Shown here piece after piece: positions 18,333 through 64,000 of a stretch of DNA of 64,000 nucleotides (position 1 is the first letter of the stretch; each line of letters starts with the position of its first letter). The DNA comes from Macrostomum lignano (Eukaryota). Where the stretch lies: assembly GCA_002269645.1 (NCBI GenBank), contig NIVC01000644.1, positions 135,996 to 199,995 on the forward strand, given 5' to 3'. The notes below the pieces were generated by a model. That model ran no database searches and was not told the origin of the DNA. It worked only from the letters and a program-made list of their open reading frames with translations. Position numbers and translations under genes: made by a program.

Positions 18333-18736
18333 ATTTGTTTGTTGTTGTTAGACTGTCTACCAGTTTCCTGTTTAGACTCTGCAGTCCAGGAAAAGCTATT
18401 AAAAGCTCACCCAGCACAAATGCGAGTTTTAGTAGACAGAAACGGTTGGATCAAACTGCGAAATGTCGGAAGTGAGCGGTTAGATTTTGATTTTGAAAAG
18501 CAAGACAGAAACATTCAACCTTAATTGTTGCTGCTGCTGAAAACGAATGAACCAGAGGGCTTAGGCTTGATTCTTTGCATCATTGGCTTTTCCCGCAGTT
18601 TTGTCTGCGTTCGCTGTTGTTCTGTTGACTTGACAAATCACGAGAGTTCAGACTGGGAGAGCTCCGTCAGATGGTCAGATGGGGCTACCAGGAGACATCA
18701 TTTGATGAAGCTTTTGGAGTTTGGAGTAAGGTTGTC

Positions 18737-19796: not shown

Positions 19797-20072
19797 CATT
19801 CTTTGGGAATCCCTGCTTTGGGAAATCCCTGCTTTGGGAATCCCTCTTCTGGGAATCCCTGCTTTGGTAAGTCCCTGCCTTGGGAATCCTTTCTTTGGGA
19901 ATCCCTCCTTTGGGAATTCCTCCTTTAGGAATCCTTCATTTGGGAATCCCGCGTACGGGAATCCCTGCTTTGGGAATCCCTTCTTTGAGAATCCCTCCTT
20001 TGGGAATCCCTGCTTTGGGAAACCTTCCCTTCGGAAACCCTTCTTTAGAAAATTCTGCTTTGGGAAATCCAC
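19797..20072. repeat. Degenerate 15-bp repeat (TTTGGGAATCCCTGC)
   Basis: About 17 units with a conserved GGGAATCCC core and variable flanks. Confidence 0.85.
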
Positions 20073-20099
20073 CTGAGAAAAAAAGGAAGAAAAACAGAA

Positions 20100-20335
20100 A
20101 TATTTTTATTAGAGGCTGGGGGCTGTATGCACCCTGGCGCATTTTAAGCGACACTGTGTCACACAACCGGCAAGCATGTACACTTCACTGTGCATTGGGG
20201 GTTGGTCCTCAGGCTGTTAATTGCACGAGCAGAGCCAAGCCGAGATTCCAATTCAGCCTCAAATTAATGTGATCGCACTTGGAATCGAGCCTGGGCCGCT
20301 GGCACATCAGAGCGCTGCGCCAGCCTTGCCGCCTC
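20100..20335 (-). mobile_element. tRNA-derived SINE copy (same family as 48550-48904)
   Basis: Reverse complement shares CCCAGGCTCGATTCCAAGTGC, GAATCTCGGCTTGGCTCTGCTCGTGCAATTAAC, CAGTGAAGTGTACATGC and GCGCCAGGGTGCA...GCCTCTAATAA with the 48.5-kb copy. Confidence 0.75.
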
Positions 20336-20844
20336 GATTTGATTAATCAAGAATGACAATAAAGTCTGCCGTTTACTCAATACGCTGATGCGAAACCTAA
20401 AGCCTATTTTTTATTGGTGTTTAACATAAAACATTCGCTATATCCATCACAAAACATCTATTTCAGTATCGAATTTTAGACTCGTATTGCACACAATACT
20501 TACAACAGAGAGTTTATATTGGAATCATATAGATATAAGTGTGTCACGGTTGTGCTGCTTAACAAATAGTGTTCACCTGTGTTTTACGGTTGCGAAGTGC
20601 CACGTACGATAAAGGAGTAAATTTCTTCTTTAATAAATTCCAAGAAACAATAATAGAATTGTCTTGATCACAAATCTCCACTAGGCAGAGTGCACAACAA
20701 CGCTAAATTTCACTGAAAAAATATATGTAAGAATGTAATATTTTTTTCCTTGACCTTACAGCAGACAGCTTTAGCAGAAGGGTGCAACACGCATAATCAT
20801 CTTGACTTTCGAATAGCAAACAGCGCGATTCCTTTGTTACCGCC

Positions 20845-21900
20845 CCCTCCGCCTCTTTGCCCCGTACCCATCCTCCTGTGCCTCTCTACCCCGTGCCCCT
20901 CCTCCACCTCTCAGCCCCGTGCCCCTTCTCCTCCGCCTCTCTATCCCGTACCCCTCCTCCTCTGCCTCTCTACCCCGTGCCCCTCCTCCTCCGCCTCTCT
21001 ACCCCGTGCCCCTCCTCATCCGCCTCTCTATCCCGTGCCCCTCTTCCTCTGCCTCTCCGCCCCGTGCCCCTTCTCCTCCGCCTCTCTATCCCGTGCCCCT
21101 CTTCCTCTGCCTCTCCGCCCCGTGCCCCTTCTCCTCCGCCTCTCTATCCCGTGCCCCTCCTCCTCTTCCTCTCTATCCCGTGCCCCTCCTCCTCCGCCTC
21201 TCTACCCCGTGCCCCTCCTCCTCTGCCTCTCTACCCCGTGCCCCTCCTCCTCTGCATCTCCGTCCCCGTGCCCCTTCTCCTCCGCCTCTCCGCCCCGTGC
21301 CCCTCCTCCTCTGCCTCTCTACCCCGTGCCCCTCCTCCTCCGCCGCTCTATCCCGTGCCCCTCCTCCTCTGCCTCTCTACCCCGTGCCCCTCCTCCTCCG
21401 CCGCTCTATCCCGTGCCCCTCCTCCTCTGCCTTTCCACCCCGAGCCCCTTCTCCTCCGCCTCTCTATCCCGTACCCCTCCTCCTCCGCCTCTCTACTCCG
21501 TGCCCCTCCTCCTCCGCCTCTCTATCCCGTGCCCCTCCTCCTCCGCCTCTCTACCCCGTGCCCCTCCTCCTCCGCCTCTCTATCCCGTGCCCCTCCTCCT
21601 CTGCCTCTCCGCCCCGTGCCCCTTCTCCTCCGCCTCTCTATCCCGTACCCATCCTCCTCTGCCTCTCTACCCCGTGCCCCTCCTCCTCTGCATCTCCGCC
21701 CCGTGCCCCTTCTCCTCCGCCTCTCTATCCCGTGCCCCTCCTCCTCTGCCTCTCTACCCCGTGCCCCTCCTCCTCCGCCTCTCTACCCCGTGCCCCTCCT
21801 CCTCCGCCTCTCTATCCCGTGCCCCTCCTCCTCTGCCTCTCCGCCCCGTGCCCCTTCTCCTCCGCCTCTCTACCCCATGCCCCTCCTCCTCCGCCTATCT
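20845..21900. repeat. 29-bp C-rich minisatellite (CCCCGTGCCCCTCCTCCTCCGCCTCTCTA)
   Basis: Directly visible; lies just past the GPCR stop codon. Confidence 0.93.
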
Positions 21901-21955: not shown

Positions 21956-23098
21956 TCATATCCGCCTCAACTGCACGGACTCCTCCCGAGACCGCTGCTC
22001 TCCAGCTGAGCAGGGCCTCAGCTTGTTGCGAAACGATGGAATCGAAACCACGTAGACAACAAAGTTGGCGAAGGAGTCCATGCTAGTGAGGGTGTTGGCC
22101 ACGCCGCTGAACACGTGCACCTTCATGCAGTGGTCGCCGCACTCGAAGTCCTTGATGATGCCAGCAATTAGCATGGGCAGCTCGCAGAGCACGAAGCTGC
22201 CGCAGAGCACCAGCACTGTGCGGTTGACGGCGTCGCTCTGGCTTCGTCGATGACGCATCGAGGTTGAGTTGGTCGACTCACGGTCGCGAGTGCTGCTCAC
22301 GCTGTTGCTGATCGGCACCTGCAGGACGTTGGCGGTATTGGCGGCTGCCCGCAGGCTGCAGGTCATCAGCGTGCTGATCACCAGCAGGCACACGATGGGC
22401 ATCGGAGACGTCAGGACGAAGAACAGCTTCGGGTAGGCGCTGTACCTGCGGCTGTGCGCGAACGCGGCCGGCGCCAGGCGCACGATCTGCCGCGACTCGG
22501 CGCACAGGAAGTAGGCAAGCTCGAAGGCACGCGGAGTCGTCAGCAGCGCCGCCAGCAGGCCGATGAGCAGCAGGCTCAGCCGGAAGGAGCGGCGCGACTG
22601 GCTCCGCTGGCTGCTCAGGCTGGCGCTGATGGCGCGGTAGCGGCGCCAGGCGATGAGCACGATGATCCAGTTGCGCAGGATCAGCGAGGATTTGTAGATG
22701 ATCCAGACCACCTGGCACACCAGGTAGATGAGGAACTGGGCTACAGCGAGAGAACTGCCAATGGGCATCAGGTGACTATTGGTGCTCCCAACCAGCAGGT
22801 AAAACAGCTCGAATGACAGGCCGCAGCTGTTGAAGCAGACCTCGCAGCAGCTCAGGTAGAATATCATCGAGATGAACAGGCTTCGACGCTTGAATGATAG
22901 GAACACCTTGATGGAGACCAGATTCACCATGAGCCCGATCATGGCCGCGATGCACTTGATGAAGTAGAGGCTGTCCAGCATCACCTGCGTGGGACCATTG
23001 TCCGCGTGGAATAGCGGCGTCTGCGGCTCAGTGCAGTTCCCGTGCACAATGTACACCATGCCGAAGGGCACATCGTCGGTGTGGTTCTCATCGAACAT
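21956..23098 (-). CDS. Rhodopsin-like (class A) 7TM GPCR, peptide/FMRFamide-receptor-like, intronless
   Basis: Seven hydrophobic segments; GLMVN in TM1, WRRYRAI at the DRY position, P in TM4 (LTTPR), FVLCELP in TM6, NFVVY in TM7; N-terminal NxT sequons. Coordinates start at the MFDEN Met; an upstream in-frame start at 27935 is displaced by the copia insertion. Confidence 0.88.
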   Translation of the reverse strand: MFDENHTDDVPFGMVYIVHGNCTEPQTPLFHADNGPTQVMLDSLYFIKCIAAMIGLMVNLVSIKVFLSFKRRSLFISMIFYLSCCEVCFNSCGLSFELFYLLVGSTNSHLMPIGSSLAVAQFLIYLVCQVVWIIYKSSLILRNWIIVLIAWRRYRAISASLSSQRSQSRRSFRLSLLLIGLLAALLTTPRAFELAYFLCAESRQIVRLAPAAFAHSRRYSAYPKLFFVLTSPMPIVCLLVISTLMTCSLRAAANTANVLQVPISNSVSSTRDRESTNSTSMRHRRSQSDAVNRTVLVLCGSFVLCELPMLIAGIIKDFECGDHCMKVHVFSGVANTLTSMDSFANFVVYVVSIPSFRNKLRPCSAGEQRSREESVQLRRI

Positions 23099-23129
23099 GG
23101 CTCTGAAAACGGTGTGATAATGGCGTGTG

Positions 23130-23416
23130 TGTTGAAGTTTGCTTCTTTTAATTAAGTATATTTTATCAGTTTGAACAAAAAGAAATACACAAGATGAAAA
23201 ATTGAGCAGTTTGGGGGGGGCACTTAAAGTATTAGCGTATTTGCGATATGAACTAACAACCATAGATATATCGGTACGATACTGTATTGAATATTTATTG
23301 AACTTTCTAGAAAGGGATACGCACAGCTATTTGCATTAACAATATTAATCAATATTATGTATCTGACAATTACTATATAAAGTACTAAAAGTACGAGCTA
23401 TATACTATAAACAACA
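23130..23416 (-). repeat. 3' LTR of the copia element, 287 bp
   Basis: Direct repeat of 27621-27907; no differences found by eye. Confidence 0.97.
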
Positions 23417-23541
23417 CTCCCACTTAATTGTCAGAAACTTATCATTGGAAGATTTAAGTTAATCGCGGTAGATTACTCAGTAGTCTCTGATATTAAAAAT
23501 GGATGACAATGACATTAGTTACTTCAGTTACTCCAGTTACT

Positions 23542-26500
23542 TCAATTCATATCCATACACTTAATACCAAGCATTGATCGCAGATTTTCAAACTGATGCC
23601 TGGGAATTGGCTTTGTTAGAATGTCCGCCAGCATTTCCTTTGTCGGACAGTATTCCAGTTTCACAGTACCAGCTTGAATAGCATCTCGAATAAAATGATA
23701 GCGGATGTCAATATGCTTTGTCCGCTTGTGTCGAATCGGATTTTTTGACATTGCAATGGCTCCTTGATTGTCTTCCTTAATTACAGTTGACCCAGTGATA
23801 TTGGCACCCAAATCACTTACAAGTCGACGAAGCCATATTGCCTCCTGTGTCGCAGACGCAAGGGCCATGTACTCAGCTTCTGTCGTTGACAACGCCACCG
23901 TGGTTTGCTTTTGACTTAACCATGTTACTGCTCCACCGGCCATAATGAAAACACTTCCAGTGACTGAGCGTCTGCTATCCAAGTCCGACGCCCAATCAGC
24001 GTCTGAGTAGCCAATGATCTCGTTACTTTCAGACTTCTCATATTTCAGAACGACGTCCGATGAGCCTTTCAGGTATCGAAGAATTCTCTTGGCAGCGGTG
24101 AGATGAGCCTCAGTTGGTTTGGAATTGAATTTCGATACTGCTCCCACTGCTTGAGCAATGTCTGGCCGTGTAGCGATCGCTGCGTACAATAGGCTGCCTA
24201 CAATTGATTGATAGGCCTTTGGATCCACGAATTTGCTGTAGCCATCGTTTTCAACGAGCTTGACGCTTGAATCCATTGGGGTTGTGGCTGGGTTTGCTTC
24301 CAACATTTTAAACTTCTTCAGTAGTTGCATAATGTATTGCTTCTGATGAAGTTGAAGAAATCGTCTCTCTGAGTCAATCACTATTGTCACTCCTAAACAG
24401 TAATGAAGCTCTCCCATATCTTTCATCTTGAATCGTCGAGTGAATTCCTCCTTGATACTCTGCATTTCATCCATAGTATCAGTAGCCATCACCAAGTCGT
24501 CAACATAAACCGCAATGATTGACATGTTTCCAAGTTTGCGAGTGAACACACATGGGTCTGCTCCACTTTCCTTGAATCCAATCGAGATTAGGTAATCACA
24601 GAGGGCCTTGTTCCAACACCGGGGTGATTGCTTTAGACCATATAGCGATCTTTTCAGCTTGCAGACTAAATTCTCTTCGTCGCATTTAACGTATCCGGGT
24701 GGTTGATCCATGAAGATTTCTTCTGTTAAATGTCCGTTTAGAAATGCAGTGACCACATCCATTTGATGAATGTGCATTTCTCGTTGAGTTGCGAATGCCA
24801 GTATAGTACGGATTGATGAGAATCTTACCACAGGAGAAAACGTCTCGTCATAATCCACTCCAGGTTGTTGAGAATACCCTTTGGCAACCAGGCGTCCTTT
24901 GAATCGTTCAATGTTTCTGCAGCTGTCATGCTTCACTTTGAATACCCACTTGCAGCCAACAGTCTTTCGTCCTTCTGGAAGAGGAACTAATTCCCACGTA
25001 TCATTTTCTATCAGAGAGTTGTATTCCGAGTCTGTTGCTTCTTTCCATTCCTTCGCATTGTCACAACTCCAAGCCTCGTCAATCGATCTGGGTTCCAAAA
25101 TCTCCATGGCTCGAAAAGCACGATGTTGTGGCTCTGTTGTACTTAGGCTAGCTACTTCGAAGTTCTCATTGTATTGAAAACGCTCTGGGGTTTTCCTTTG
25201 TCGCGTGGTCGTTGGCAGAATTTGTTGGATTTCAGTTTCAATTTCTTCATTCGGAGTTGTTCGGCTGTTGTGCTCGTCGAGGTTGACTTCCATATGTGAA
25301 TTTATCTTTTCATTGTTCTGCTGGAAATCATTCAACTTTCCGAAGTCTCCCTCATTGAAGATGACATCGTAACGAACAACTGTTTTCCTAGTTCTTTCGT
25401 CAAACAATCTGTAGCCCTTTTGATTGTCACTGTAGCCAACGAACCTTAGCTTGGTAGTCTTCTTATCAAGTTTTTGTCTCTCTACTGTAGGAATGTGAGC
25501 ATAAGCTACACAGCCAAACGTTCGAAGATGTGAGATGTTTGGCTTTCGTCCACACCATCTTTCGTAGGGTGTCATCATTGGCGCTACCGAGTTCGTCGGG
25601 ACTCTGTTGCGGATATACGCGGCTGTGTTGATGGCTTCTGCCCAATAAGCATTGCTAAGACCAGCATGAGTTATCATTGTTCTAGCAGATTCGATGAGAG
25701 TACGGTTCATTCTTTCAGCAACACCGTTCTGTTCTGGTGTATGGGCTACCGAAATTTCGTGTCGAATTCCTTTTGCAAGTAAAAACGCAGAAAATTCCTT
25801 GGACATGTACTCTCCTCCACCATCAGTTCGGAGAACTTTTATTGTTTTTTCAGTCTCATTTGTCACCTGCGCTTCGAATTCCTTAAACTTCTGGAAGACT
25901 TCAGACTTAGTCTTCAGAAAATAGACCTTCACAATGCGAGAGAAATCATCGATGAAAGTCGCAAAAAATCGATTCCCGCCAAACGACTGCGTCTGCATTG
26001 GTCCACAAATGTCACTGTGCACAAGTTGCAGTACTTCTGATGAGCGAATTTCTCCGACTGATTTGTGATTCTTTCGATGCGCCTTTCCTTCAACGCACGC
26101 TTCACAGAAATTCATATCACTCACAATGGAAGTGTCAGTACCCTCGACGTACCTTTTCTTGAATAGTTGTTCGAGTTGATTTCTGTGGAGATGTCCTAGA
26201 CGATGATGCCACAAATTGGCAGTTTCGAGCTCTGACTTTGTAGTCGTTACTGCAGCTGTAGCTAAGTTGTAATCTACATCACACTCAAGTTGATACAATC
26301 GATCAACTAGTGTTCCAAAGCCTACTAGCTTCCCTGTTTGGTTTCGAATCCAGCACCTAGTGTGACCAAACTGAATGACATTGTTCTTAAGTGTAGCCGC
26401 ACGTACACTGAACAGATTGCAGGCTAGTCTAGGTACGAAAAGTACAGATCCAAGAACTGCGTTAGAACGCTCACCACCAGGGAGTCTCGTGACGATGTTC

Positions 26501-27555
26501 ACTCGTCCAGTTCCGTAAGCTTGAACTGTTCGCCCGTCTCCGAGCCCTACATTTTCCGGTTCATCGAATTCAGTGTAGTCTTTTAGAGCATTCCTTTGAC
26601 AGGTCATATGTCTTGTCGCACCAGAGTCAATTATCCACCGTGCGGTTGTGTCCTGAGGACCAGTTTCTTCAGAGGTAAGAAATGTAGCGGCACTATCGGC
26701 TATCTCGTTGTCCAGGTTCGGATTCGAATGACTCGTACTTTCTGCAGCTTTAGCTTTATGCAGAGTCGATTTTGAGTTTTGCTGCCTGTTGCTCACGTTG
26801 AACCTGCACTCTCTACTGAAGTGTCCTTCCTTGCCACATGTGTAGCACTTAATTGGTCTGCGTCCCTTAAATTTGTCAACACGAAGAGCAGATTCCGAAT
26901 CACGGGATTCGTATTTCATAGTTTCACTTCGTTTCATTTCTTCATTAAGCAGTGCTTGTTGAACCGTCAGCAAAGTCAGCTCCTCTTCCTTTCGGGTCTC
27001 CAGAGCCGTAACCAGATGACTGTAGCTGTCAGGTAGACTGCTAAGAAGAATCACAACCTGGTCTTCGTCAGACACAGCAGCATTAATGGACGCCAGCTTG
27101 TCAGTTAACTCCTTCAGACAGCGAATGTGCTCCTGAACTGGAGTCCCATCAGTCATCTGCAGTCTAAATAGTTTTTTCTTCAAAAACAACTTGTTGGCAG
27201 TCGAGTCACGTTCGAAATGACCACATAAAATTTGCCACATCTGCCTCGGATCATCATCGCATGTAGTCACAAGGTAGATGTACTCACTGCTGAGAGACAG
27301 AACTATCATTGCTGCTGCTCGCTGTTGCTGTTCCTTGAATTCATTGCGTCGTGCTTCATTTGCGTCTTGCTGAAGAACATCTTCTCCGGTAGCTATGCCC
27401 CAGAGTCTTCTTGCGATTAAGCAATGTTTCATTTGGATTTTCCACGTCATCCAATTGTCCTTCGTGAGCTTCTCTATGTGCCATTTTTCTTCGCTTGCAG
27501 CCATAGCAACGTAACTGATCGACCGAGCGATCAAGTTTCCAGATGGCACGAACAA
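23542..27555 (-). CDS. Copia Gag-Pol polyprotein (Gag, CCHC knuckle, protease, integrase, RT, RNase H), 1337 aa, uninterrupted
   Basis: CYTCGKEGHFSREC; WIIDSGATRHMT; LWHHRLGH...CEAC; VHSDICGP, LRTDGGGEY, QNGVAERMNRT; YVDD; GYSDADWA; TKHIDIRYHF. Integrase precedes RT, the copia order. The true start is probably the MAASEEK Met. Confidence 0.98.
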   Translation of the reverse strand: MFVPSGNLIARSISYVAMAASEEKWHIEKLTKDNWMTWKIQMKHCLIARRLWGIATGEDVLQQDANEARRNEFKEQQQRAAAMIVLSLSSEYIYLVTTCDDDPRQMWQILCGHFERDSTANKLFLKKKLFRLQMTDGTPVQEHIRCLKELTDKLASINAAVSDEDQVVILLSSLPDSYSHLVTALETRKEEELTLLTVQQALLNEEMKRSETMKYESRDSESALRVDKFKGRRPIKCYTCGKEGHFSRECRFNVSNRQQNSKSTLHKAKAAESTSHSNPNLDNEIADSAATFLTSEETGPQDTTARWIIDSGATRHMTCQRNALKDYTEFDEPENVGLGDGRTVQAYGTGRVNIVTRLPGGERSNAVLGSVLFVPRLACNLFSVRAATLKNNVIQFGHTRCWIRNQTGKLVGFGTLVDRLYQLECDVDYNLATAAVTTTKSELETANLWHHRLGHLHRNQLEQLFKKRYVEGTDTSIVSDMNFCEACVEGKAHRKNHKSVGEIRSSEVLQLVHSDICGPMQTQSFGGNRFFATFIDDFSRIVKVYFLKTKSEVFQKFKEFEAQVTNETEKTIKVLRTDGGGEYMSKEFSAFLLAKGIRHEISVAHTPEQNGVAERMNRTLIESARTMITHAGLSNAYWAEAINTAAYIRNRVPTNSVAPMMTPYERWCGRKPNISHLRTFGCVAYAHIPTVERQKLDKKTTKLRFVGYSDNQKGYRLFDERTRKTVVRYDVIFNEGDFGKLNDFQQNNEKINSHMEVNLDEHNSRTTPNEEIETEIQQILPTTTRQRKTPERFQYNENFEVASLSTTEPQHRAFRAMEILEPRSIDEAWSCDNAKEWKEATDSEYNSLIENDTWELVPLPEGRKTVGCKWVFKVKHDSCRNIERFKGRLVAKGYSQQPGVDYDETFSPVVRFSSIRTILAFATQREMHIHQMDVVTAFLNGHLTEEIFMDQPPGYVKCDEENLVCKLKRSLYGLKQSPRCWNKALCDYLISIGFKESGADPCVFTRKLGNMSIIAVYVDDLVMATDTMDEMQSIKEEFTRRFKMKDMGELHYCLGVTIVIDSERRFLQLHQKQYIMQLLKKFKMLEANPATTPMDSSVKLVENDGYSKFVDPKAYQSIVGSLLYAAIATRPDIAQAVGAVSKFNSKPTEAHLTAAKRILRYLKGSSDVVLKYEKSESNEIIGYSDADWASDLDSRRSVTGSVFIMAGGAVTWLSQKQTTVALSTTEAEYMALASATQEAIWLRRLVSDLGANITGSTVIKEDNQGAIAMSKNPIRHKRTKHIDIRYHFIRDAIQAGTVKLEYCPTKEMLADILTKPIPRHQFENLRSMLGIKCMDMN

Positions 27556-27591
27556 CCAGATTACCAGAATGATCTAGTACATCGAAGTACT

Positions 27592-27620
27592 CGCAGTGGA
27601 AGCGTGCTGGGCCCATAACC
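27592..27620 (-). other. Primer-binding site complementary to the 5' half of initiator tRNA-Met
   Basis: The + strand CGCAGTGGAAGCGTGCTGGGCCCATAACC equals the D-arm to anticodon-stem sequence of metazoan tRNA-iMet as I recall it; it abuts the 5' LTR. Confidence 0.9.
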
Positions 27621-27907
27621 TGTTGAAGTTTGCTTCTTTTAATTAAGTATATTTTATCAGTTTGAACAAAAAGAAATACACAAGATGAAAAATTGAGCAG
27701 TTTGGGGGGGGCACTTAAAGTATTAGCGTATTTGCGATATGAACTAACAACCATAGATATATCGGTACGATACTGTATTGAATATTTATTGAACTTTCTA
27801 GAAAGGGATACGCACAGCTATTTGCATTAACAATATTAATCAATATTATGTATCTGACAATTACTATATAAAGTACTAAAAGTACGAGCTATATACTATA
27901 AACAACA
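27621..27907 (-). repeat. 5' LTR of the copia element, 287 bp
   Basis: Direct repeat of 23130-23416. Confidence 0.97.
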
Positions 27908-44508: not shown

Positions 44509-44998
44509 AGGCTATGGTCGGTGCTACTTCTCGTGCACCTCAGCGCACACCTGCACTGGCGATGGCACTGCCATGGTCAGCCGCGCTGGCCTGCCCAACC
44601 AGGACATGGAATTTGTCCAGTTCCATCCTACTGGCATCTATGGAGCGGGCTGCCTCATCACCGAGGGCTGCCGTGGCGAAGGCGGCTACTTGGTTAATAG
44701 CGAGGGCGAAAGGTTCATGGAGCGCTACGCTCCTGTTGCCAAGGACTTGGCCAGCCGCGACGTGGTGTCTCGTGCCATGACCATCGAGATTCGCGAGGGC
44801 CGCGGAGTTGGCAAGGACAAGGACCACATCTTCCTGCAGCTGCACCACCTGCCGCCTGAACAGCTGCGCAGCCGCCTGCCGGGCATCTCCGAGACCGCCC
44901 ACATCTTTGCCGGGGTGGACGTGACCCGGGAGCCGATCCCTGTGCTGCCCACTGTGCACTACAACATGGGCGGCGTGCCCACCAACTGGCAGGGCCAG
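44509..44998 (+). CDS. SDHA: SDHA exon 2
   Basis: Acceptor CCGCAG; completes ATGGYGR, then [46 protein letters not shown]; donor is GCGAGT. Confidence 0.95.
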
Positions 44999-45023
44999 GC
45001 GAGTTGCGCCCCATGATTATTCG

Positions 45024-45561
45024 AATAGCCAGTCTCATTAGATTGATAGCCAGTCTCATTAGATTGATAGCCAGTCTCATTAGATTCATAGCCAGTCTCA
45101 TTAGATTGATAGCCAGTCTCATTAGATTGATAGCCAGTCTCATTAGATTGATAGCCAGTCTCATTAGATTGATAGCCAGTCTCATTAGATTGATAGCCAG
45201 TCTCATTAGATTGATAGCCAGTCTCATTAGATTGATAGCCAGTCTCATTAGATTGATAGCCAGTCTCATTAGATTGATAGCCAGTCTCATTAGATTCATA
45301 GCCAGTCTCATTAGATTCATAGCTAGTCTCATTAGATTCATAGCCAGTCTCATTAGATTGATAACTAGTCTCATTAGATTGATAGCCAGTCTCATTAGAT
45401 TGATAGCCAGTCTCATTAGATTGATAACTAGTCTCATTAGATTGATAGCCAGTCTCATTAGATTGATAGCCAGTCTCATTAGATTGATAGCCAGTCTCAT
45501 TAGATTCATAGCCAGTCTCATTAGATTCATAGCCAGTCTCATTAGATTCATAGCCAGTCTC
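45024..45561. repeat. 21-bp minisatellite (ATTAGATTGATAGCCAGTCTC) filling SDHA intron 2
   Basis: About 25 copies occupying most of the 580-nt intron 44999-45578. Confidence 0.97.
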
Positions 45562-45578
45562 CTGTCCCCCTCCCGCAG

Positions 45579-50219: not shown

Positions 50220-53200
50220 TTAAGGCTGATGCTTGCCCTGCGGCTTTCCTTTGCTGGGTCCCTTCAGATGCTGCTTTTTGGCAGCTCTCCCGCCGGACTT
50301 TTTCTCGCCATTTCCGCCGGCCTTGTGTACTTGAACTTTTTTCTTCTTATTAGATTCGTTTCTCTCGGAGCCGCCTACAATCATCCTCTTCTTGTTCTTC
50401 TCTGAAACAGTCAAACTTGTTGATGAATTGCATGCTAGTGTGTCAGAAATGTCGCCATTGTGAGTCATGGCGCTGATACTCACTTCTAAACTGAGGCGGC
50501 AGGGAGCTCTCGGAGCCGCCTACAATCATCCTCTTCTTGTTCTTCTCTGAAACAGTCAAACTTGTTGATGAATTGCATGCTAAAGTGTGTCAGAAATGTC
50601 GCCATTGTGAGTCATGGCGCTGATACTCACTTCTAAACTGAGGCGGTAGGGAGCTCTCGGAGCCGCCTACAATCATCCTCTTCTTGTTCTTCTCTGAAAC
50701 AGTCAAACTTGTTGATGAATTGCATGCTAAAGTGTGTCAGAAATGTCGCCATTGTGAGTCATGGCGCTGATACTCACTTCTGAACTGAGGCGGTAGGGAG
50801 CTCTCGGAGCCGCCTACAATCATCCTCTTCTTGTTCTTCTCTGAAACAGTCAAACTTGTTGATGAATTGCATGCTAGTGTGTCAGAAATGTCGCCATTGT
50901 GAGTCATGGCGCTGATACTCACTTCTAAACTGAGGCGGCAGGGAGCTCTCGGAGCCGCCTACAATCATCCTCTTCTTGTTCTTCTCTGAAACAGTCAAAC
51001 TTGTTGATGAATTGCATGCTAGTGTGTCAGAAATGTCGCCATTGTGAGTCATGGCGCTGATACTCACTTCTAAACTGAGGCGGCAGGGAGCTCTCGGAGC
51101 CGCCTACAATCATCCTCTTCTTGTTCTTCTCTGAAACAGTCAAACTTGTTGATGAATTGCATGCTATTGTGTCAGAAATGTCGCCATTGTGAGTCATGGC
51201 GCTGATACTCACTTCTAAACTGAGGCGGCAGGGAGCTCTCGGAGCCGCCTACAATCATCCTCTTCTTGTTCTTCTCTGAAACAGTCAAACTTGTTGATGA
51301 ATTGCATGCTAAAGTGTGTCAGAAATGTCGCCATTGTGAGTCATGGCGCTGATACTCACTTCTAAACTGAGGCGGCAGGGAGCTCTCGGAGCCGCCTACA
51401 ATCATCCTCTTCTTGTTCTTCTCTGAAACAGTCAAACTTGTTGATGAATTGCATGCTAGTGTGTCAGAAATGTCGCCATTGTGAGTCATGGCGCTGATAC
51501 TCACTTCTAAACTGAGGCGGCAGGGAGCTCTCGGAGCCGCCTACAATCATCCTCTTCTTGTTCTTCTCTGAAACAGTCAAACTTGTTGATGAATTGCATG
51601 CTATTGTGTCAGAAATGTCGCCATTGTGAGTCATGGCGCTGATACTCACTTCTAAACTGAGGCGGCAGGGAGCTCTCGGAGCCGCCTACAATCATCCTCT
51701 TCTTGTTCTTCTCTGAAACAGTCAAACTTGTTGATGAATTGCATGCTAAAGTGTGTCAGAAATGTCGCCATTGTGAGTCATGGCGCTGATACTCACTTCT
51801 AAACTGAGGCGGTAGGGAGCTCTCGGAGCCGCCTACAATCATCCTCTTCTTGTTCTTCTCTGAAACAGTCAAACTTGTTGATGAATTGCATGCTAGTGTG
51901 TCAGAAATGTCGCCATTGTGAGTCATGGCGCTGATACTCACTTCTAAACTGAGGCGGCAGGGAGCTCTCGGAGCCGCCTACAATCATCCTCTTCTTGTTC
52001 TTCTCTGAAACAGTCAAACTTGTTGATGAATTGCATGCTAGTGTGTCAGAAATGTCGCCATTGTGAGTCATGGCGCTGATACTCACTTCTAAACTGAGGC
52101 GGCAGGGAGCTCTCGGAGCCGCCTACAATCATCCTCTTCTTGTTCTTCTCTGAAACAGTCAAACTTGTTGATGAATTGCATGCTAGTGTGTCAGAAATGT
52201 CGCCATTGTGAGTCATGGCGCTGATACTCACTTCTAAACTGAGGCGGCAGGGAGCTCTCGGAGCCGCCTACAATCATCCTCTTCTTGTTCTTCTCTGAAA
52301 CAGTCAAACTTGTTGATGAATTGCATGCTAAAGTGTGTCAGAAATGTCGCCATTGTGAGTCATGGCGCTGATACTCACTTCTAAACTGAGGCGGTAGGGA
52401 GCTCTCGGAGCCGCCTACAATCATCCTCTTCTTGTTCTTCTCTGAAACAGTCAAACTTGTTGATGAATTGCATGCTAGTGTGTCAGAAATGTCGCCATTG
52501 TGAGTCATGGCGCTGATACTCACTTCTAAACTGAGGCGGCAGGGAGCTCTCGGAGCCGCCTACAATCATCCTCTTCTTGTTCTTCTCTGAAACAGTCAAA
52601 CTTGTTGATCAATTTCATGCTAAAGTGTGTCAGAAATGTCGCCATTGTGAGTCATGGCGCTGATACTCACTTCTAAACTGAGGCGGTAGGGAGCTCTCGG
52701 AGCCGCCTACAATCATCCTCTTGTTCTTCTCTGAAACAGTCAAACTTCTTGATCAATTTCATGCTAAAGTGTGTCAGAAATGTCGCCATTGTGAGTCATG
52801 GCGCTGATACTCACTTCTGAACTGAGGCGGCAGGGAGCTCTCGGAGCCGCCTACAATCATCCTCTTCTTGTTCTTCTCTGAAACAGTCAAACTTCTTGAT
52901 AAATTTCATGCTAAAGTGTGTCAGAAATGTCGCCATTGTGAGTCGTGGCGCTGATACTCACTTCTAAACTGAGGCGGCAGGGAGCTCTCGGAGCCGCCTA
53001 CAATCATCCTCTTCTTGTTCTTCTCTGAAACAGTCAAACTTCTTGATCAATTTCATGCTAAAGTGTGTCAGAAATGTCGCCATTGTGAGTCATGGCGCTG
53101 ATACTCACTTCTAAACTGAGGCGGTAGGGAGCTCTCGGAGCCGCCTACAATCATCCTTTCTTGTTCTTCTCTGAAACAGTCAAACTTCTTGATCAATTTC

Positions 53201-56200
53201 ATGCTAAAGTGTGTCAGAAATGTCGCCATTGTGAGTCATGGCTGATACTCACTTCTGAACTGAGGCGGTAGGGAGCTCTCGGAGCCGCCTACAATCATCC
53301 TCTTCTTGTTCTTCTCTGAAACAGTCAAACTTCTTGATCAATTTCATGCTAAAGTGTGTCAGAAATGTCGCCATTGTGAGTCATGGCGCTGATACTCACT
53401 TCTGAACTGAGGCGGTAGGGAGCTCTCGGAGCGCCTACAATCATCCTCTTCTTGTTCTTCTCTGAAACAGTCAAACTTCTTGATCAATTTCATGCTAAAG
53501 TGTGTCAGAAATGTCGCCATTGTGAGTCATGGCGCTGATACTCACTTCTAAACTGAGGCGGTAGGGAGCTCTCGGAGCCGCCTACAATCATCCTGTTCTT
53601 GTTCTTCTCTGAAACAGTCAAACTTCTTGATCAATTTCATGCTAAAGTGTGTCAGAAATGTCGCCATTGTGAGTCATGGCGCTGATACTCACTTCTGAAC
53701 TGAGGCGGTAGGGAGCTCTCGGAGCCGCCTACAATCATCCTCTTCTTGTTCTTCTCTGAAACAGTCAAACTTCTTGATCAATTTCATGCTAAAGTGTGTC
53801 AGAAATGTCGCCATTGTGAGTCATGGCGCTGATACTCACTTCTGAACTGAGGCGGTAGGGAGCTCTCGGAGCCGCCTACAATCATCCTCTTCTTGTTCTT
53901 CTCTGAAACAGTCAAACTTCTTGATAAATTTCATGCTAAAGTGTGTCAGAAATGTCGCCATTGTGAGTCATGGCGCTGATACTCACTTCTAAACTGAGGC
54001 GGCAGGGAGCTCTCGGAGCCGCCTACAATCATCCTCTTCTTGTTCTTCTCTGAAACAGTCAAACTTCTTGATCAATTGCATGCTAAAGTGTGTCAGAAAT
54101 GTCGCCATTGTGAGTCATGGCGCTGATACTCACTTCTGAACTGAGGCGGCAGGGAGCTCTCGGAGTCGCCTACAATCATCCTCTTCTTGTTCTTCTCTGA
54201 AACAGTCAAACTTCTTGACAATTGCATGCTAAAGTGTGTCAGAAATGTCGCCATTGTGAGTCGTGGCGCTGATACTCACTTCTAAACTGAGGCGGCAGGG
54301 AGCTCTCGGAGCCGCCTACAATCATCCTTTTCTTATTCTTCTCTGAAACAGTCAAACTTGTTGATCAATTTCATGCTAAAGTGTGTCAGAAATGTCGCCA
54401 TTGTGAGTCATGGCGCTGATACTCACTTCTGAACTGAGGCGGCAGGGAGCTCTCGGAGCCGCCTACAATCATCCTCTTCTTGTTCTTCTCTGAAACAGTC
54501 AAACTTCTTGATCAATTTCATGCTAAAGTGTGTCAGAAATGTCGCCATTGTGAGTCATGGCGCTGATACTCACTTCTGAACTGAGGCGGTAGGGAGCTCT
54601 CGGAGCCGCCTACAATCATCCTCTTCTTGTTCTTCTCTGAAACAGTCAAACTTCTTGATCAATTTCATGCTAAAGTGTGTCAGAAATGTCGCCATTGTGA
54701 GTCATGGCGCTGATACTCACTTCTAAACTGAGGCGGCAGGGAGCTCTCGGAGCCGCCTACAATCATCCTCTTCTTGTTCTTCTCTGAAACAGTCAAACTT
54801 CTTGATCAATTGCATGCTAAAGTGTGTCAGAAATGTCGCCATTGTGAGTCATGGCGCTGATACTCACTTCTGAACTGAGGCGGCAGGGAGCTCTCGGAGT
54901 CGCCTACAATCATCCTCTTCTTGTTCTTCTCTGAAACAGTCAAACTTCTTGAACAATTGCATGCTAAAGTGTGTCAGAAATGTCGCCATTGTGAGTCGTG
55001 GCGCTGATACTCACTTCTGAACTGAGGCGGCAGGGAGCTCTCGGAGCCGCCTACAATCATCCTCTTCTTGTTCTTCTCTGAAACAGTCAAACTTCTTGAT
55101 CAATTTCATGCTAAAGTGTGTCAGAAATGTCGCCATTGTGAGTCATGGCGCTGATACTCACTTCTGAACTGAGGCGGCAGGGAGCTCTCGGAGCCGCCTA
55201 CAATCATCCTCTTCTTGTTCTTCTCTGAAACAGTCAAACTTCTTGAACAATTGCATGCTAAAGTGTGTCAGAAATGTCGCCATTGTGAGTCGTGGCGCTG
55301 ATACTCACTTCTAAACTGAGGCGGCAGGGAGCTCTCGGAGCCGCCTACAATCATCCTCTTCTTGTTCTTCTCTGAAACAGTCAAACTTCTTGATCAATTT
55401 CATGCTAAAGTGTGTCAGAAATGTCGCCATTGTGAGTCATGGCGCTGATACTCACTTCTAAACTGAGGCGGCAGGGAGCTCTCGGAGCCGCCTACAATCA
55501 TCCTCTTCTTGTTCTTCTCTGAAACAGTCAAACTTGTTGATCAATTTCATGCTAAAGTGTGTCAGAAATGTCGCCATTGTGAGTCATGGCGCTGATACTC
55601 ACTTCTAAACTGAGGCGGCAGGGAGCTCTCGGAGCCGCCTACAATCATCCTCTTCTTGTTCTTCTCTGAAACAGTCAAACTTGTTGATCAATTTCATGCT
55701 AAAGTGTGTCAGAAATGTCGCCATTGTGAGTCATGGCGCTGATACTCACTTCTAAACTGAGGCGTTAGGGAGCTCTCGGAGCCGCCTACAATCATCCTCT
55801 TGTTCTTCTCTGAAACAGTCAAACTTCTTGATCAATTTCATGCTAAAGTGTGTCAGAAATGTCGCCATTGTGAGTCATGGCGCTGATACTTACTTCTGAA
55901 CTGAGGCGGCAGGGAGCTCTCGGAGCCGCCTACAATCATCCTCTTCTTGTTCTTCTCTGAAACAGTCAAACTTCTTGATAAATTTCATGCTAAAGTGTGT
56001 CAGAAATGTCGCCATTGTGAGTCGTGCCGCTGATACTCACTTCTAAACTGAGGCGGCAGGGAGCTCTCGGAGCCGCCTACAATCATCCTCTTCTTGTTCT
56101 TCTCTGAAACAGTCAAACTTCTTGATCAATTTCATGCTAAAGTGTGTCAGAAATGTCGCCATGTCCCATTAGATTAGTGGCCTTACATAACCTTTGCGTT

Positions 56201-56783
56201 TTGAATGTAGTTTTGCGCTTTTCTTTCAGCCTATAAATGGCGCTTCGAGCGTGTTGAATGGTTGTTTTTTGTGACATATTTGTTGCATTTACCTTTTAGG
56301 AAGTCTTTTGAGGTTTCATCTCGGCTGGTTTTGAGCTGTTGCAGAACTGAAGCGTTTCAATTATTCCGCTGTTATTAGGACAGAGTACCCAGTTTCATCT
56401 TTAATAGTACGAGCTAAGCAGTGGAAAACCCGTTACTCACTTCGACACTTCCTCCTCCATGCCTCTCGTCACCTTCTTCACCTGTAGAAGGCTCTTCTTC
56501 TTCTTCCTCTTCTTCCTCTTCTGGAAAAAGTTCCTCGTGGTCATCATCAGACTCTGTAATGTTGCGGGTTTCAAAGGAGGTCCTTCGAGTGTACGGTAAT
56601 CAAGTGTTGCTATGCAAGCACAATATTAGTTACTCTGTTTGCTACATAGAGTAGTCAGTCAAGCCAAGCCTGCTTATACTCACCTGATCCTGGAACTGGT
56701 CTGGCTTGGCAGCGAGTGCCAACCAGAAGCAAAACGAGCAGCAACAAGCTGTTCACTGCAGCTGCTCTGCCCTTCAGCGGCAT
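50220..56783 (-). CDS. Predicted secreted multi-copy peptide precursor (about 960 aa) encoded by a tandem exon-intron array
   Basis: Exon 1 56783-56684 (MPLKGRAAAVNSLLLLVLLLVGTRCQARPVPGS, signal-peptide-like); exon 2 56553-56441 (acidic, SDDDHEELFPE10...SVE); exon 3 56335-56293 (LKTSRDETSKDFLK); 39 repeat exons from 56103-56041 down to 50546-50484; terminal exon 50401-50220 (Lys-rich, ends in TAA). All junctions are GT-AG and phase-compatible, except that two repeat exons lack 1 nt. No transcript evidence is available here. Confidence 0.7.
50365..56161. repeat. 145-147-bp tandem array, about 40 units; each unit is one 63-nt exon plus one 82-84-nt intron on the - strand
   Basis: The unit read on the - strand: GTGAGTATCAGC...GTTTGACTGTTTCAG, then AGAAGAACAAGAAGAGGATGATTGTAGGCGGCTCCGAGAGCTCCCTGCCGCCTCAGTTTAGAA, then GTGAGT. 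Confidence 0.97.
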
Positions 56784-56927: not shown

Positions 56928-56935
56928 TATTTATA
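56928..56935 (-). promoter_or_regulatory. Candidate TATA box (TATAAATA) of the peptide-precursor gene
   Basis: About 145 nt upstream of the ATG at 56783, with no other ATG seen between them on the - strand. Confidence 0.55.
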
Positions 56936-56943: not shown

Positions 56944-57045
56944 GTGGACCTGACCCTGGAGCCAATCCCTGTGCTGCCCACTGTGCACTACGACATGCGT
57001 GCCCACCAACTGGCAGGGCCAGACGAGTTGCGCTCGATAATTATT
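56944..57045 (+). pseudogene. SDHA: Duplicated 3' end of SDHA exon 2 plus start of intron 2
   Basis: Aligns to 44915-45030 with several substitutions, a 5-nt deletion in the MGG codons and the donor changed from GC to AC; continues into the same 21-bp satellite. Confidence 0.9.
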
Positions 57046-59235
57046 CGAATAGCCAGTCTCATTAGATTGATAGCCATTCTCATTAGATTGATAGTCATTC
57101 TCATTAGATTGATAGCCAGTCTCATTAGATTGATAGCCAGTCTCATTAGATTGATAGCCAGTCTCATTAGATTGATAGCCAGTCTCATTAGATTGATAGC
57201 CAGTCTCATTAGATTGATAGCCAGTCTCATTAGATTGATAGCCAGTCTCATTAGATTCATAGCCAGTCTCATTAGATTGATAGCCAGTCTCATTAGATTG
57301 ATAGCCAGTCTCAGTCTCATTAGATTGATAGCCAGTCTCATTAGATTGATAGCCAGTCTCATTAGATTGATAGCCAGTCTCATTACATAAGATTGATAGC
57401 CAGTCTCATTAGATAAGATTGATAGCCAGTCTCATTAGATAAGATTGATAGCCAGTCTCATTAGATTGATAGCCAGTCTCATTAGATTGATAGCCAGTCT
57501 CATTAGATAAGATTGATAGCCAGTCTTATTAGATAAGATTGATAGCCAGTCTCATTAGATAAGATTGATAGCCAGTCTCATTAGATTGATAGCCAGTCTC
57601 ATTAGATTGATAGCCAGTCTCATTAGATAAGATTGATAGCCAGTCTTATTAGATAAGATTGATAGCCAGTCTCATTAGATAAGATTGATAGCCAGTCTCA
57701 TTAGATAGGATTGATAGCTAGTCTCATTAGATTGATAGCCAGTCTCATTAGATTGATAGCCAGTCTCATTAGATTGATAGTCAGTCTCATTAGATTGATA
57801 GCCAGTCTCATTAGATTGATAGCCAGTCTCATTAGATTGATAGTCAGTCTCATTAGATTGATAGCCAGTCTCATTAGATTGATAGCCAGTCTCATTAGAT
57901 TGATAGCCAGTCTCATTAGATTCATAGCCAGTCTCATTAGATTGATAGCCAGTCTCATTAGATTGATAGCCAGTCTCATTAGATTGATAGCCAGTCTCAT
58001 TAGATTGATAGCCAGTCTCATTAGATTGATAGCCAGTCTCATGAGATAAGATTGATAGCCAGTCTCATTACATTAGTTTGATAGCCAGTTTCATTAGATA
58101 AGATTGATAGCCAGTCTCATTACATTAGTTTGATAGCCAGTTTCATTAGATAAGATTGATAGCCAGTCTCATTACATTAGTTTGATAGCCAGTCTCATTA
58201 GATTGATAGCCAGTCTCATTAGATTGATAGCCAGTCTCATTAGATTGATAGCCAGTCTCATTAGATTGATAGCCAGTCTCATTAGATTGATAGCCAGTCT
58301 CATTAGATTGATAGCCAGTCTCATTAGATTGATAGCCAGTCTCATTAGATTGATAGCCAGTCTCATTAGATTGATAGCCAGTCTCATTAGATTGATAGCC
58401 AGTCTCATGAGATAAGATTGATAGCCAGTCTCATTACATTAGTTTGATAGCCAGTTTCATTAGATAAGATTGATAGCCAGTCTCATTACATTAGTTTGAT
58501 AGCCAGTCTCATTAGATTGATAGCCAGTCTCATTAGATTGATAGCCAGTCTCATTAGATTGATAGCCAGTCTCATTAGATTGATAGCCAGTCTCATTAGA
58601 TTGATAGCCAGTCTCATTAGATTGATAGCCAGTCTCATTAGATTGATAGCCAGTCTCATTAGATTGATAGCCAGTCTCATTAGATTGATAGCCAGTCTCA
58701 TTAGATTGATAGCCAGTCTCATTAGATTGATAGCCAGTCTCATTAGATTGATAGCCAGTCTCATTAGATTGATAGCCAGTCTCATTAGATTGATAGCCAG
58801 TCTCATTAGATTGATAGCCAGTCTCATTAGATTGATAGCCAGTCTCATTAGATTGATAGCCAGTCTCATTAGATTGGTAGCCAGTCTCATTAGATTGATA
58901 GCCAGTCTCATTAGATTGATAGCCAGTCTCATTAGATTGATAGCCAGTCTCATTAGATTGATAGCCAGTCTCATTAGATTGATAGCCAGTCTCATTAGAT
59001 TGATAGCCAGTCTCATTAGATTGATAGCCAGTCTCATTAGATTGATAGCCAGTCTCATTAGATTGATAGCCAGTCTCATTAGATTGATAGCCAGTCTCAT
59101 TAGATTGATAGCCAGTCTCAGTCTCATTAGATTGATAGCCAGTCTCATTAGATTGATAGCCAGTCTCATTAGATTGATAGCCAGTCTCATTAGATTGATA
59201 GTCAGTCTCATTAGATTCAAAGCCAGTCACATCAG
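57045..59235. repeat. Expanded 21-bp satellite (ATTAGATTGATAGCCAGTCTC), about 2.2 kb, with 26-bp variant blocks
   Basis: Same unit as SDHA intron 2; 5-nt insertion variants cluster at about 57390-57710 and 58040-58490. Confidence 0.97.
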
Positions 59236-59309
59236 ATTACATCACATCGGAAGAAGCAGTCGAGATATGTGGGGGCGTTGCAGACTGCTGAATGTTCTCC
59301 AGTAATTTT

Positions 59310-62380: not shown

Positions 62381-64000
62381 CCTCTACGCGACGAACCAAA
62401 AAATGCGTCACACCCTTTGCCGACGGCTGGCTGGCACGATTTCGTGCCAAGTGCATGAGTGTCAGAATTTCTACCCCCGTTCCAGACGGCAGCTAGCTCC
62501 ACAAGTATACCCGTATGTAACAAAGCCGCTTAACCAAAAGATAATTTGTCTATGGCTGGGGACCAAATGCTATGGCTGCATGTCTTTCATTCATGAGAAA
62601 ACCTTACAGGGAAATATGGAAAGGGCACTATTTTCGGCCATAGATTTTTATTGAAATCACTGTCGTGCTCATAATAGTTCTGCCAAGGACCTGCTTCAGA
62701 AATACAGAAACAGTCTTATTATAAAATTGGATCCTCTGTCTACCCAAAGCACCAAGCATTTCGCTCCTGAGAATCATTACATGGCGTTAGACTTTGACGG
62801 AGACTCGGAGTGAGCTGGTTCACTGCTGATGATGAGTCAATTGACGGATCCAAAGTTGAAAATCCCCATAGTGACCAAGAAGAAGGGCAGGATGAGTCAC
62901 TTGTAGAGAAACATGGCATCTTGTTGAAGATGGCGCTGATGCCAGCCAGCACCTCTGCTGAGTTCCTCGGAGTACCAGGAGTCAGGCCCGATTTGCAGCT
63001 TCCTGAGATCGCCGACGGAAACGAGGTGATTTTATCAAGCTGTACGAGGGCTGAGCAAATAGTTTCAGATTTCAGAATCTGATTTTGTCAGATTTTGTCA
63101 GCCCTCTCAACTATGCACATCCGGAAACTTATTGCTCAGCCCTCGTATTTGACGGACGGGTTGATGGAGAACATCAAGAACTGGACAACACGCAAAGGTT
63201 TGGAAGACCTATGAGGATAACTTTGACGGTGGAGCAGTCGCCAAATTTTGTGCTGAACTGGAAGGACTGCACGGTTAATGAAGTAAGAAAATTGATCGGA
63301 ATTGTTTTGCTGATGGGACTGGACAAGAAGCCTGAAATATCGAGCTATTGGTCGCAAGATCCGGCTTATCACTGTGCATTTCTTGCTGAGCCTTGTTCTC
63401 TTCCTAGAGACAGGTTCAAGCAGATCTTGTCCTGTTTTCGCTTTTACGATTGCACTGAGGCTCTGCACGGGGGTCCCTTGGCTAAGACGCAGCCTTTTTC
63501 TGCAACAGGCTAAGCGCTGTGCAGCAACAACTATGCCTCGTCAGCGGCTCTCGATTGACGAAAGTCTCGTGCTGTACAAGGGAAGACTGTTGTTCAAGCA
63601 GTACATCCCAACGAAGAGCAGTAAGTACGGAATCAAGATGTACTGCCTTTGTGAGTCCGAACATGACCTACCTGTGGAATTTTGAAATCCATACATCAAC
63701 TGAAGCCAACCAATTGTTCGTGATGGACTGGGCTGTCAAAATTTGTCCATGAGTGAGAGAGTTGTGGCTGAGTTGTGCCGCAATTTGCTTTACCTAGGCT
63801 ACCATATTTTCACAGACAGTTGGTTCACTTCGCACAGACTTGCTACGTGGCTGCTGCAACGGAATGTTCTTCTCACTGACACAGTGCGCAAAAACCGCGG
63901 CATCCCAAACCTGCTGCAGGCTGTAAATCTGCAGCCAACTTCTTCCCATTGCACGCTCTGGAAATGTGCTTGCCTGCAAGTTTGTTGACAGGAAACAGAG
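62381..64000 (+). mobile_element. Decayed piggyBac element (PGBD-like DDD transposase pseudogene), runs off the window end
   Basis: WKDCTVNEVRKLIGIVLLMGL...YWS...RDRFKQILSCFRF; LSIDESLVLYKGRLLFKQYIPTKSSKYGIKMYCLCES; YHIFTDSWFTS...TVRKNR, split over three frames. TTAA followed by CCTC at 62377-62384 is a possible left end (uncertain). Confidence 0.85.

Follow-up and report, generated by a model that had tools for sequence, protein, structure and literature searches.

Coding Repeats in Peptide Precursors and Exon Arrays

Multi-copy peptide precursors that are cut at basic sites, such as the yeast alpha-factor precursor MFalpha1, the cnidarian Antho-RFamide precursors, the honeybee apidaecin precursor, and the antifreeze glycoprotein polyproteins of notothenioids, constitute one of the known kinds of genes with repeated coding sequences. 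A second kind is made up of symmetrical-exon arrays and coding variable number tandem repeats (VNTRs) evolving by unequal crossing-over, as occurs in the kringle IV-2 repeat of LPA, the PEVK exons of titin, and the mucin VNTRs. In this work we analyse a stretch of 64,000 nucleotides from the flatworm Macrostomum lignano (GenBank assembly GCA_002269645.1, contig NIVC01000644.1, positions 135,996 to 199,995), hereinafter called the window, in which position p corresponds to position 135995+p of the contig and whose end is the end of the contig. It carries on its minus strand a gene with 39 tandem copies of an exon encoding KKNKKRMIVGGSESSLPPQFR, a new example of two familiar gene types, the coding minisatellite whose unit comprises an exon and its intron and the gene for a multi-copy repeat protein. 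Taking into account the evidence described below, it is likely that an expressed gene for a secreted and strongly basic protein has the array as its repeat region, that the array has been shaped by the copying of units together with moderate purifying selection, and that the frame-disrupting deletions in its exons are artefacts.

The flatworm gene resembles the multi-copy peptide precursors in its predicted signal peptide, its acidic pro-region, and its many identical short peptides in tandem, as well as in the basic residues of convertase type that bound each repeat (KR before Met and RKK after Phe). Unlike the known precursors, whose copies all lie in one exon, each flatworm copy occupies its own 63-nt exon, accompanied by an intron of 82-84 nt; moreover, the repeat has no Gly for amidation, the tail of the protein is Lys-rich, and cleavage is only predicted from sequence. 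With the LPA kringle IV-2 repeat, the titin PEVK exons, and the mucin VNTRs, the array shares phase-symmetrical units, differences in copy number, array-specific variants, and block duplications, although the flatworm unit measures only 147 bp including its intron and is present in 39 near-identical copies.

M. lignano is also known to secrete Mlig-ap1, a protein with large Lys/Arg-rich repeats that has a core of C-type lectin, vWD, C8, TIL, and EGF domains and, besides it, 'GRK' low-complexity repeats (PMC8621496). The protein described here belongs to the same animal, would likewise be secreted, and has long, strongly positive repeat regions, but it is built from a defined 21-residue unit and lacks the Mlig-ap1 domain core, which is absent from the complete gene model (signal peptide, acidic stretch, repeats, and Lys-rich tail). 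Text searches found no mention of the peptide or of its motif in papers, and general searches of the literature on M. lignano neuropeptides and secreted Lys-rich repeat proteins yielded no description of the gene. The protein family is uncharacterised.

Anatomy of the Repeat-Protein Gene

Tandem Repeats Finder detects a 147-bp array at 50362-56162 (39.7 copies, 97% matches, score 10685), which is far above the chance level. This array is the repeat region of the minus-strand gene, with 39 units that encode 21-residue repeats and differ from each other by 2.4% on average. Each unit is composed of a phase-1/1 exon and its intron, and every one of them has an acceptor TTTCAG/AG, a donor GAA/GT(G/A)AGT, and a CTGAC branch-like site, and is open in phase 1 only. 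The unique exons (exons 1-3 and the terminal exon) are in phase with the repeat exons (Table 1).

Two further copies of the locus, located on contigs NIVC01000645.1 (L005) and NIVC01000800.1 (L006), were reached through the identifiers of two homeologs of the SDHA protein encoded in the window. The GenBank model of the homeologous L005 copy begins about 23 nt downstream of the position equivalent to that of the TATA box. By inspection, the predicted signal peptide MPLKGRAAAVNSLLLLVLLLVGTRCQA, which is followed by RP, has a basic n-region, a hydrophobic core of 15 residues, and small residues at -3 and -1. Both this signal peptide and the exon 1-exon 2 junction are found in the M. lignano UniProt models P0001, P0005, P0006, and P0007, and one UniProt paralog model bears the name 'Secreted protein'. 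The product, whose secretion is suggested by these features, would begin with a signal peptide and a short acidic pro-region, continue with 39 copies of KKNKKRMIVGGSESSLPPQFR, and end in a Lys-rich tail, the repeat having a net charge of about +5 per 21 residues.

The GenBank annotation of M. lignano derives from a genome-guided RNA-seq assembly (PMC5730564), and its models on NIVC01000644.1 (159 aa) and NIVC01000645.1 (258 aa) run on the same strand as the predicted gene and end at the same stop. The first of them follows the predicted phase, and its 159 residues are accounted for as 15+84+60, a length that only the predicted exon boundaries and phase reproduce; simple exon combinations did not reproduce the 258-residue model. 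In addition, the UniProt paralog models show the junctions RPVRGP/ESEE and PPQFR/KKNKKR, which match the predicted exon joins. No DNA records are available for the paralog models P0001, P0002, P0003, and P0008. The public models are truncated, with 159 and 258 aa compared with the about 900 aa of the complete protein. The annotation pipeline dropped those transcripts that overlapped repeat annotations (PMC5730564), and, in our judgement, 39 identical exons are beyond what short reads can resolve.

Table 1. Features of the repeat-protein gene and its upstream flank (positions in the window)
Feature	Position	Strand	Basis
Duplicate of SDHA sequence (3' end of exon 2 and beginning of the intron that follows), directly adjacent to the TATA box	56944..57030	+	Sequence comparison
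Minisatellite ATAGCCAGTCTCATTAGATTG (21 bp), also present in SDHA intron 2 (45025-45561)	57049..59238		Tandem Repeats Finder
TATA box TATAAATA of the repeat-protein gene	56928..56935	-	Read directly
Exon 1: ATG and predicted signal peptide MPLKGRAAAVNSLLLLVLLLVGTRCQA followed by RPVPGS; ends in phase 1, donor GTGAGT	56684..56783	-	Read and spliced translation
Exon 2: acidic pro-region ESDDDHEELFPEEEEEEEEEEPSTGEEGDERHGGGSVE	56441..56553	-	Read and spliced translation
Exon 3 (predicted): LKTSRDETSKDFLK, 43 nt, restores phase 1 before the array	56293..56335	-	Paralog models hold a related stretch, LAGRDEVSRSSKDIQK
Array units 1-24, type A: KKNKKRMIVGGSESSLPPQFR exons and 84-nt introns	52587..56103	-	Collinear with the 23-unit array of L005
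Type-B part of the array (units 25-39), with +61C and +67C in the intron	50402..52586	-	Collinear with the 13-unit array of L006
Terminal exon KKNKKRMIVGGSERNESNKKKKVQVHKAGGNGEKKSGGRAAKKQHLKGPSKGKPQGKHQP: same phase, Lys-rich tail, stop TAA at 50222-50220	50220..50401	-	GenBank coding model ends at the same stop
GenBank coding model, 159 aa; starts at the MIVGG ATG of unit 18, spans four repeat exons, and finishes in the terminal exon	50220..53591	-	L007 (second locus on NIVC01000644.1) 17495-20866
Unit 3 exon, 60 nt: one Lys codon missing and P>T	55750..55809	-	Direct extraction
Unit 24 exon, 60 nt: one Lys codon missing	52671..52730	-	Direct extraction
Unit 19 exon, 62 nt: 1-bp deletion GGCGGC>GGCGC (about 53432), frameshift as assembled	53400..53461	-	Sequence read
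Unit 21 exon, 62 nt: 1-bp deletion AAGAAGAGG>AAGAAAGG (about 53157)	53109..53170	-	Sequence read

Concerted Evolution of the Array

The three assembled copies of the locus contain 39 (window), 23 (L005), and 13 (L006) repeat units, 75 in total. The L005 copy is a complete gene whose units are all of type A, while the 13 units of L006 are all of type B and have intact exons. A previous sequence-only reading of this DNA had divided the array, on the basis of its intron variants, into two subfamilies separated at about 52600. The division lies between 52587 and 52586, with units 1-24 on one side and units 25-39 on the other; the two subfamilies are therefore the two array types found separately on L005 (A) and L006 (B), which meet in the window at about 52587. 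The intron substitution +61 G>C is carried by all 28 type-B units (those of the window and of L006 taken together) and by none of the 47 units of type A, and the 2-bp intron deletion of type B (which leaves an intron of 82 nt and affects 10 of the 15 type-B units of the window) is confined to B units. B units differ among themselves by 0.55% on average and A units by 2.3%, and the mean distance from A to B units is 3.1%.

The order of the units is collinear among copies, with window units 5-24 corresponding to units 1-21 of L005, and window units 30-39 to units 6-13 of L006. Window units 1-3 repeat the haplotypes of units 22-24, as expected from one duplication of a three-unit block, and few unit gains or losses other than this are seen between the window and the other two copies. 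This pattern suggests that there has been little turnover of units since the copies of the locus separated. Concerted evolution of the array is supported by these data, and the near-identity of the units can be attributed mainly to recent copying, since the introns are as uniform as the exons. Similarly, the variants TTC and CTA are common because units were copied in blocks, and not through independent events.

As regards the mechanism, the 147-bp exon-plus-intron unit would behave as a minisatellite, in which unequal crossing-over or slippage would add or remove single units or whole blocks. Given that the exon is symmetrical (phase 1/1), this copying would leave the reading frame and the splice sites undisturbed, and it would give rise both to the different copy numbers (39, 23, and 13) and to the intron variants specific to each array type, with a moderate purifying selection on the peptide acting on top of it. 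Coding repeats whose exon and intron expand and contract as one unit have a clean natural example in this locus, and the presence of three copy-number states in one sequenced line makes copying and selection separable.

Variation among the Units

When the 39 units of the window were directly extracted, each variant listed in the sequence-only reading was found where that reading had placed it, although four small deletions had been overlooked, two of them in exons (units 19 and 21) and two in introns (a 1-bp deletion at about 54218 in unit 13 and a 2-bp deletion at about 53242 in unit 20, the latter distinct from the 2-bp deletion of type B). The two common exon polymorphisms, TTT/TTC and CTG/CTA, are synonymous and occur in 13 units each, and unit 13 (exon 54342-54280) bears two additional synonymous changes, AAT and AAA. 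One AAG (Lys) codon is missing in units 3 and 24, with KR kept in both cases, and a variant donor, GTAAGT, is present in unit 2. Non-synonymous changes are of three types. G>D is found twice, in unit 9, whose exon ends at 54868, and in unit 14, whose exon ends at 54134; unit 18 carries K>N (53546), and unit 3 carries P>T. The same reading had placed the difference between units of 145 and 147 bp entirely in the intron. The difference between introns of 82 and 84 nt is indeed intronic, and units of 144 and 146 bp exist as well.

Proposed Purifying Selection on the Repeat Peptide

The same reading had proposed that purifying selection on the peptide acts together with concerted evolution. The latter is supported, as described above; the former receives moderate support, and only when the three copies of the locus are pooled, the window alone being insufficient. 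In an alignment of the 39 units, the distribution of the variants of the window is close to random placement, which that reading had itself named as the outcome that would speak against selection.

Within the window, four of the six variable exon sites are third codon positions (P=0.10), and four of the seven distinct exon substitutions are synonymous, compared with an expected 21% (P=0.04 assuming uniform mutation). The types of insertions and deletions are equally dense in exon and intron, and the ratio of transitions to transversions is 5/2 in the exon and 2/7 in the intron (P=0.13). Purifying selection is not established from the window alone. Among the pooled units there are nine exon substitutions, six of which are synonymous (AAT, AAA, CTA, CCA, TTC, and AGG) and three non-synonymous (K>N, G>D, and P>T). 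This synonymous excess has a probability of 0.004 under uniform mutation, 0.02 given the mix of transitions and transversions, and 0.003 with the mutation spectrum of the intron. Third positions represent six of the eight variable exon sites (P=0.02), the ratio of non-synonymous to synonymous change (dN/dS) is roughly 0.13, and no non-synonymous variant is present in more than two units of any array. Furthermore, the core IVGGSESSL(P/A)PQFRKKN is kept in the otherwise diverged paralogs P0003 and P0008, which provides independent support for a constraint on the peptide. Taken together, these data moderately support purifying selection on the peptide.

Other results from the same alignments weigh against such selection. 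Substitution-variable sites are as frequent in the exon as in the intron, both in the window (6/63 vs. 8/84, odds ratio 1.0, P=1) and in the pooled units (8/63 vs. 10/84, P=1), and the synonymous excess of the window is not significant when it is conditioned on its five transitions and two transversions (P=0.10). In the pooled units, the density of non-synonymous variants (0.06 per site) is not significantly depleted with respect to that of the intron (0.13 per site; P=0.17), and synonymous variants reach a density of 0.45, higher than the intron value (P=0.02), which is not what simple purifying selection predicts.

Alternative Explanations

Most of the latter observations would fit a young array without any selection on the peptide, in which the synonymous excess is due to chance or to a mutational bias spread by the copying of units. 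Equal densities in exon and intron, window-only tests with P=0.04-0.10, and the lack of a significant non-synonymous depletion speak for this explanation, and so does the fact that TTC and CTA became frequent through the copying of blocks. It accounts poorly for the pooled data, in which the proportion of synonymous substitutions (6/9 vs. 21%) and that of third positions both exceed expectation, for the restriction of each non-synonymous variant to one or two units per array, and for the maintenance of the motif in diverged paralogs, and it is considered improbable. A different objection concerns the reading frame. As assembled, the translation from the ATG runs into a stop at 53297-53295 after 489 residues, which include 18 intact units, and units 22-39 plus the terminal exon constitute, when read separately, an intact frame of 437 residues. 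If the frameshifts were real, the copies in the window and on contig NIVC01000645.1 would be truncated alleles or decaying pseudogenes with 18 (or 9) repeats, and the downstream units would have been kept uniform by copying alone. In accordance with this, the deletion at alignment column 14 of unit 21 also exists in units 10 and 18 of L005, the GenBank models are short, and the DV1 line carries extra chromosome copies (PMC5730564), so that redundant copies could decay. A further point in its favour, which runs counter to the artefact explanation that we prefer, is that window unit 21 and L005 unit 18 are counterparts that share the deletion, which could therefore be real and inherited. On the other side, the three single-base deletions of the window all fall on sites that are polymorphic for substitutions, namely, column 14 (G/A/C; unit 21), columns 30-31 (G/A; unit 19, at the site behind the G>D change of units 9 and 14), and column 125 (A/T). 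The probability of this coincidence is about 0.002-0.004, and it is expected of artefacts but not of random real deletions. A comparable case is that of window unit 13, with AAT and AAA, whose counterpart, L005 unit 10, has AAT and a deletion at the AAA site. Beyond the deletions, 18 units and the terminal exon maintain a perfect frame, and the 13 exons of L006 are all intact. The M. lignano assembly was generated with PacBio reads and Canu and was polished with Pilon only (PMC5730564); judging from this method, Pilon would be ineffective within near-identical repeats, and residual insertions and deletions are to be expected. Thus, because all of them coincide with polymorphic sites, the 1-bp deletions are probably consensus artefacts arising where reads from two alleles were mixed, and real frameshifts seem unlikely. 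The locus would then illustrate that single-base deletions in the long-read consensus of near-identical repeats can mimic frameshifts, and it would also make clear why the public models of the gene are too short.

The junction between the two array types raises another question, since it could have originated when the assembler switched haplotypes within the repeat, joining an A-type to a B-type allele. This would explain why the contig NIVC01000645.1 copy holds only A units and the contig NIVC01000800.1 copy only B units. It also agrees with the flanks of the window gene, the 5' flank of which is separated from that of L005 by a single substitution and a 10-nt indel over 857 nt (99.9% identity), while its 3' flank differs from L006 at one of 452 positions (99.8%) and from L005 at 15 (about 96.7% identity). 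In addition, the M. lignano assembly is redundant and partly collapsed (PMC5730564). However, the SDHA region of the window likewise alternates between stretches resembling L005 and stretches resembling L006, and such a mosaic may reflect real recombination among homeologous chromosomes. Moreover, the L006 copy has been rearranged, in that a minisatellite and a duplicate of SDHA exons 3-4 adjoin its array, and it does not represent a plain B-type version of the entire gene. Overall, the A/B junction may be a real recombinant or a haplotype switch made during assembly, the switch being somewhat less likely than not.

Fate of the Product

Two fates can be envisaged for the protein encoded by the expressed gene that we propose, and the odds of both are about equal. 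It could be processed at the RKK and KKR sites, releasing about 39 copies of MIVGGSESSLPPQF, or it could act as an intact polycationic secreted protein. With regard to the former, once units 19 and 21 are set aside because they are frameshifted as assembled, 36 of the remaining 37 have KR before MIVGG and RKK after PQF, the exception being unit 18, with NR instead of KR, and the sites KKR/M and F/RKK fit cleavage by a proprotein convertase. With regard to the latter, Lys abounds all along the tail outside the repeats and in the paralogs, and basic sites are missing from the related repeats of other organisms, so an intact polycationic protein would fit equally well. If it is cut into about 39 peptide copies, this protein would be among the highest-copy peptide precursors in flatworms; if it remains intact, it would represent another polycationic secretory protein in an animal used for the study of bioadhesion.

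A role of the intron as a structured RNA or mirtron was also considered and rejected, given that its folding energy (-19.2 kcal/mol) has a z of only -1.0 against shuffled sequences and that Rfam gives no match at gathering score.

Motif Relatives in Alveolates

An exhaustive phmmer search with the paralog P0007 retrieved only two proteins from outside Macrostomum. The first, CAE7229251.1 from Symbiodinium natans (E=1.4e-9), contains three copies of M[VS][IV]G[GD]D[ED]SSLPPEYR with a period of 21 residues and shows 49% identity over 57 ungapped residues. The second, CAD8062986.1 from Paramecium sonneborni (E=7.6e-4), has three related copies of the motif. In S. natans, the repeats lie in one exon, and there are two tandem copies of the gene with four and three motif copies (6103-6585 and 16193-16618 of locus L004, CAJNDS010000705.1). 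These repeats are similar to those of the flatworm in their 15-residue core, in the 21-residue period of Symbiodinium, and in a copy number that varies between tandem genes, but in the alveolates the linkers are not basic, being either acidic or rich in His and Asp, the copies number only three or four, and the host proteins are otherwise unrelated. A profile search of the PDB with the motif gave a single match at chance level (E=7).

The likeness between flatworm and alveolate motifs could be due to homology or to convergence. It might be speculated, with considerable doubt, that the 15-residue core M-[IV]-[IV]-G-G-[SD]-E-[SN]-S-L-P-P-[QE]-[FY]-R, with its period of about 21 residues, is an ancient and undescribed eukaryotic extracellular repeat or short linear motif that flatworm, dinoflagellate, and ciliate have in common, of which the flatworm gene would be an extreme, copy-number-variable expansion in the form of an exon-plus-intron minisatellite. 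If this were true, the core might be a ligand or a modification site for a conserved partner.

Flanking Duplications and Genomic Setting

Directly upstream of the TATA box, about 85 nt from the 3' end of SDHA exon 2 and the start of its intron have been duplicated together with the ATAGCCAGTCTCATTAGATTG minisatellite (cf. 44920-45561). The same 21-bp minisatellite is also found in L006 (19975-21224), where it directly adjoins the 5' side of the 13-unit array, the breakpoint lying within the intron of a unit, and is followed by another copy of both SDHA exons 3-4 and the intergenic region; this join could be either a rearrangement mediated by the minisatellite or a misassembly. In the unique intron that precedes the first unit (window 56165-56185), the sequence AATCTAATGGGAC, located at the start of the homology with the repeat introns, matches the 21-bp minisatellite unit at 12 of 13 positions, a similarity that may be due to chance (about 0.08 expected per window).

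In the L005 allele, exon 2 is longer by 10 bases at its 3' end (window 56444 vs. about 21548-21560 of L005). This difference changes the phase in which exon 2 ends, and consequently exon 3 would be out of frame in L005 and direct splicing to the repeats in frame.

Simple and tandem repeats make up 15% of the M. lignano genome (PMC5730564), and the window is rich in minisatellites, with 46 Tandem Repeats Finder rows. Apart from the repeat-protein gene, it contains an intronless mago nashi, an intact Ty1/copia element, a receptor-like open reading frame (ORF), and a four-exon SDHA gene. Intron 2 of SDHA (44999-45578) appears to use a GC donor (CAG/GCGAGT), and the spliced SDHA protein is identical to GenBank PAA79275.1. 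The mago nashi gene is located at 2124-2582, and three contigs of the assembly, Mlig_3_7, encode the identical protein (L001-L003); L002 matches window positions 1-12582 with 100% identity. In unique DNA the identity of the three is about 95%, and their minisatellites vary in length; they are homeologous or allelic copies of the whole region.

The Ty1/copia retrotransposon (23130-27907) carries on the minus strand an ORF for a polyprotein of 1337 aa (23542-27555), and its 287-nt long terminal repeats are 100% identical, which indicates a very recent insertion. It sits just upstream of the receptor-like ORF (21956-23263), whose product looks like a seven-helix protein. Finally, a telomere-like 20-bp tandem repeat, ACCCTAACCTAAACCCAAAC, is found inside the contig (30173-30678), and a fragment of a PiggyBac-type transposase ORF lies near its end (63085-63513).

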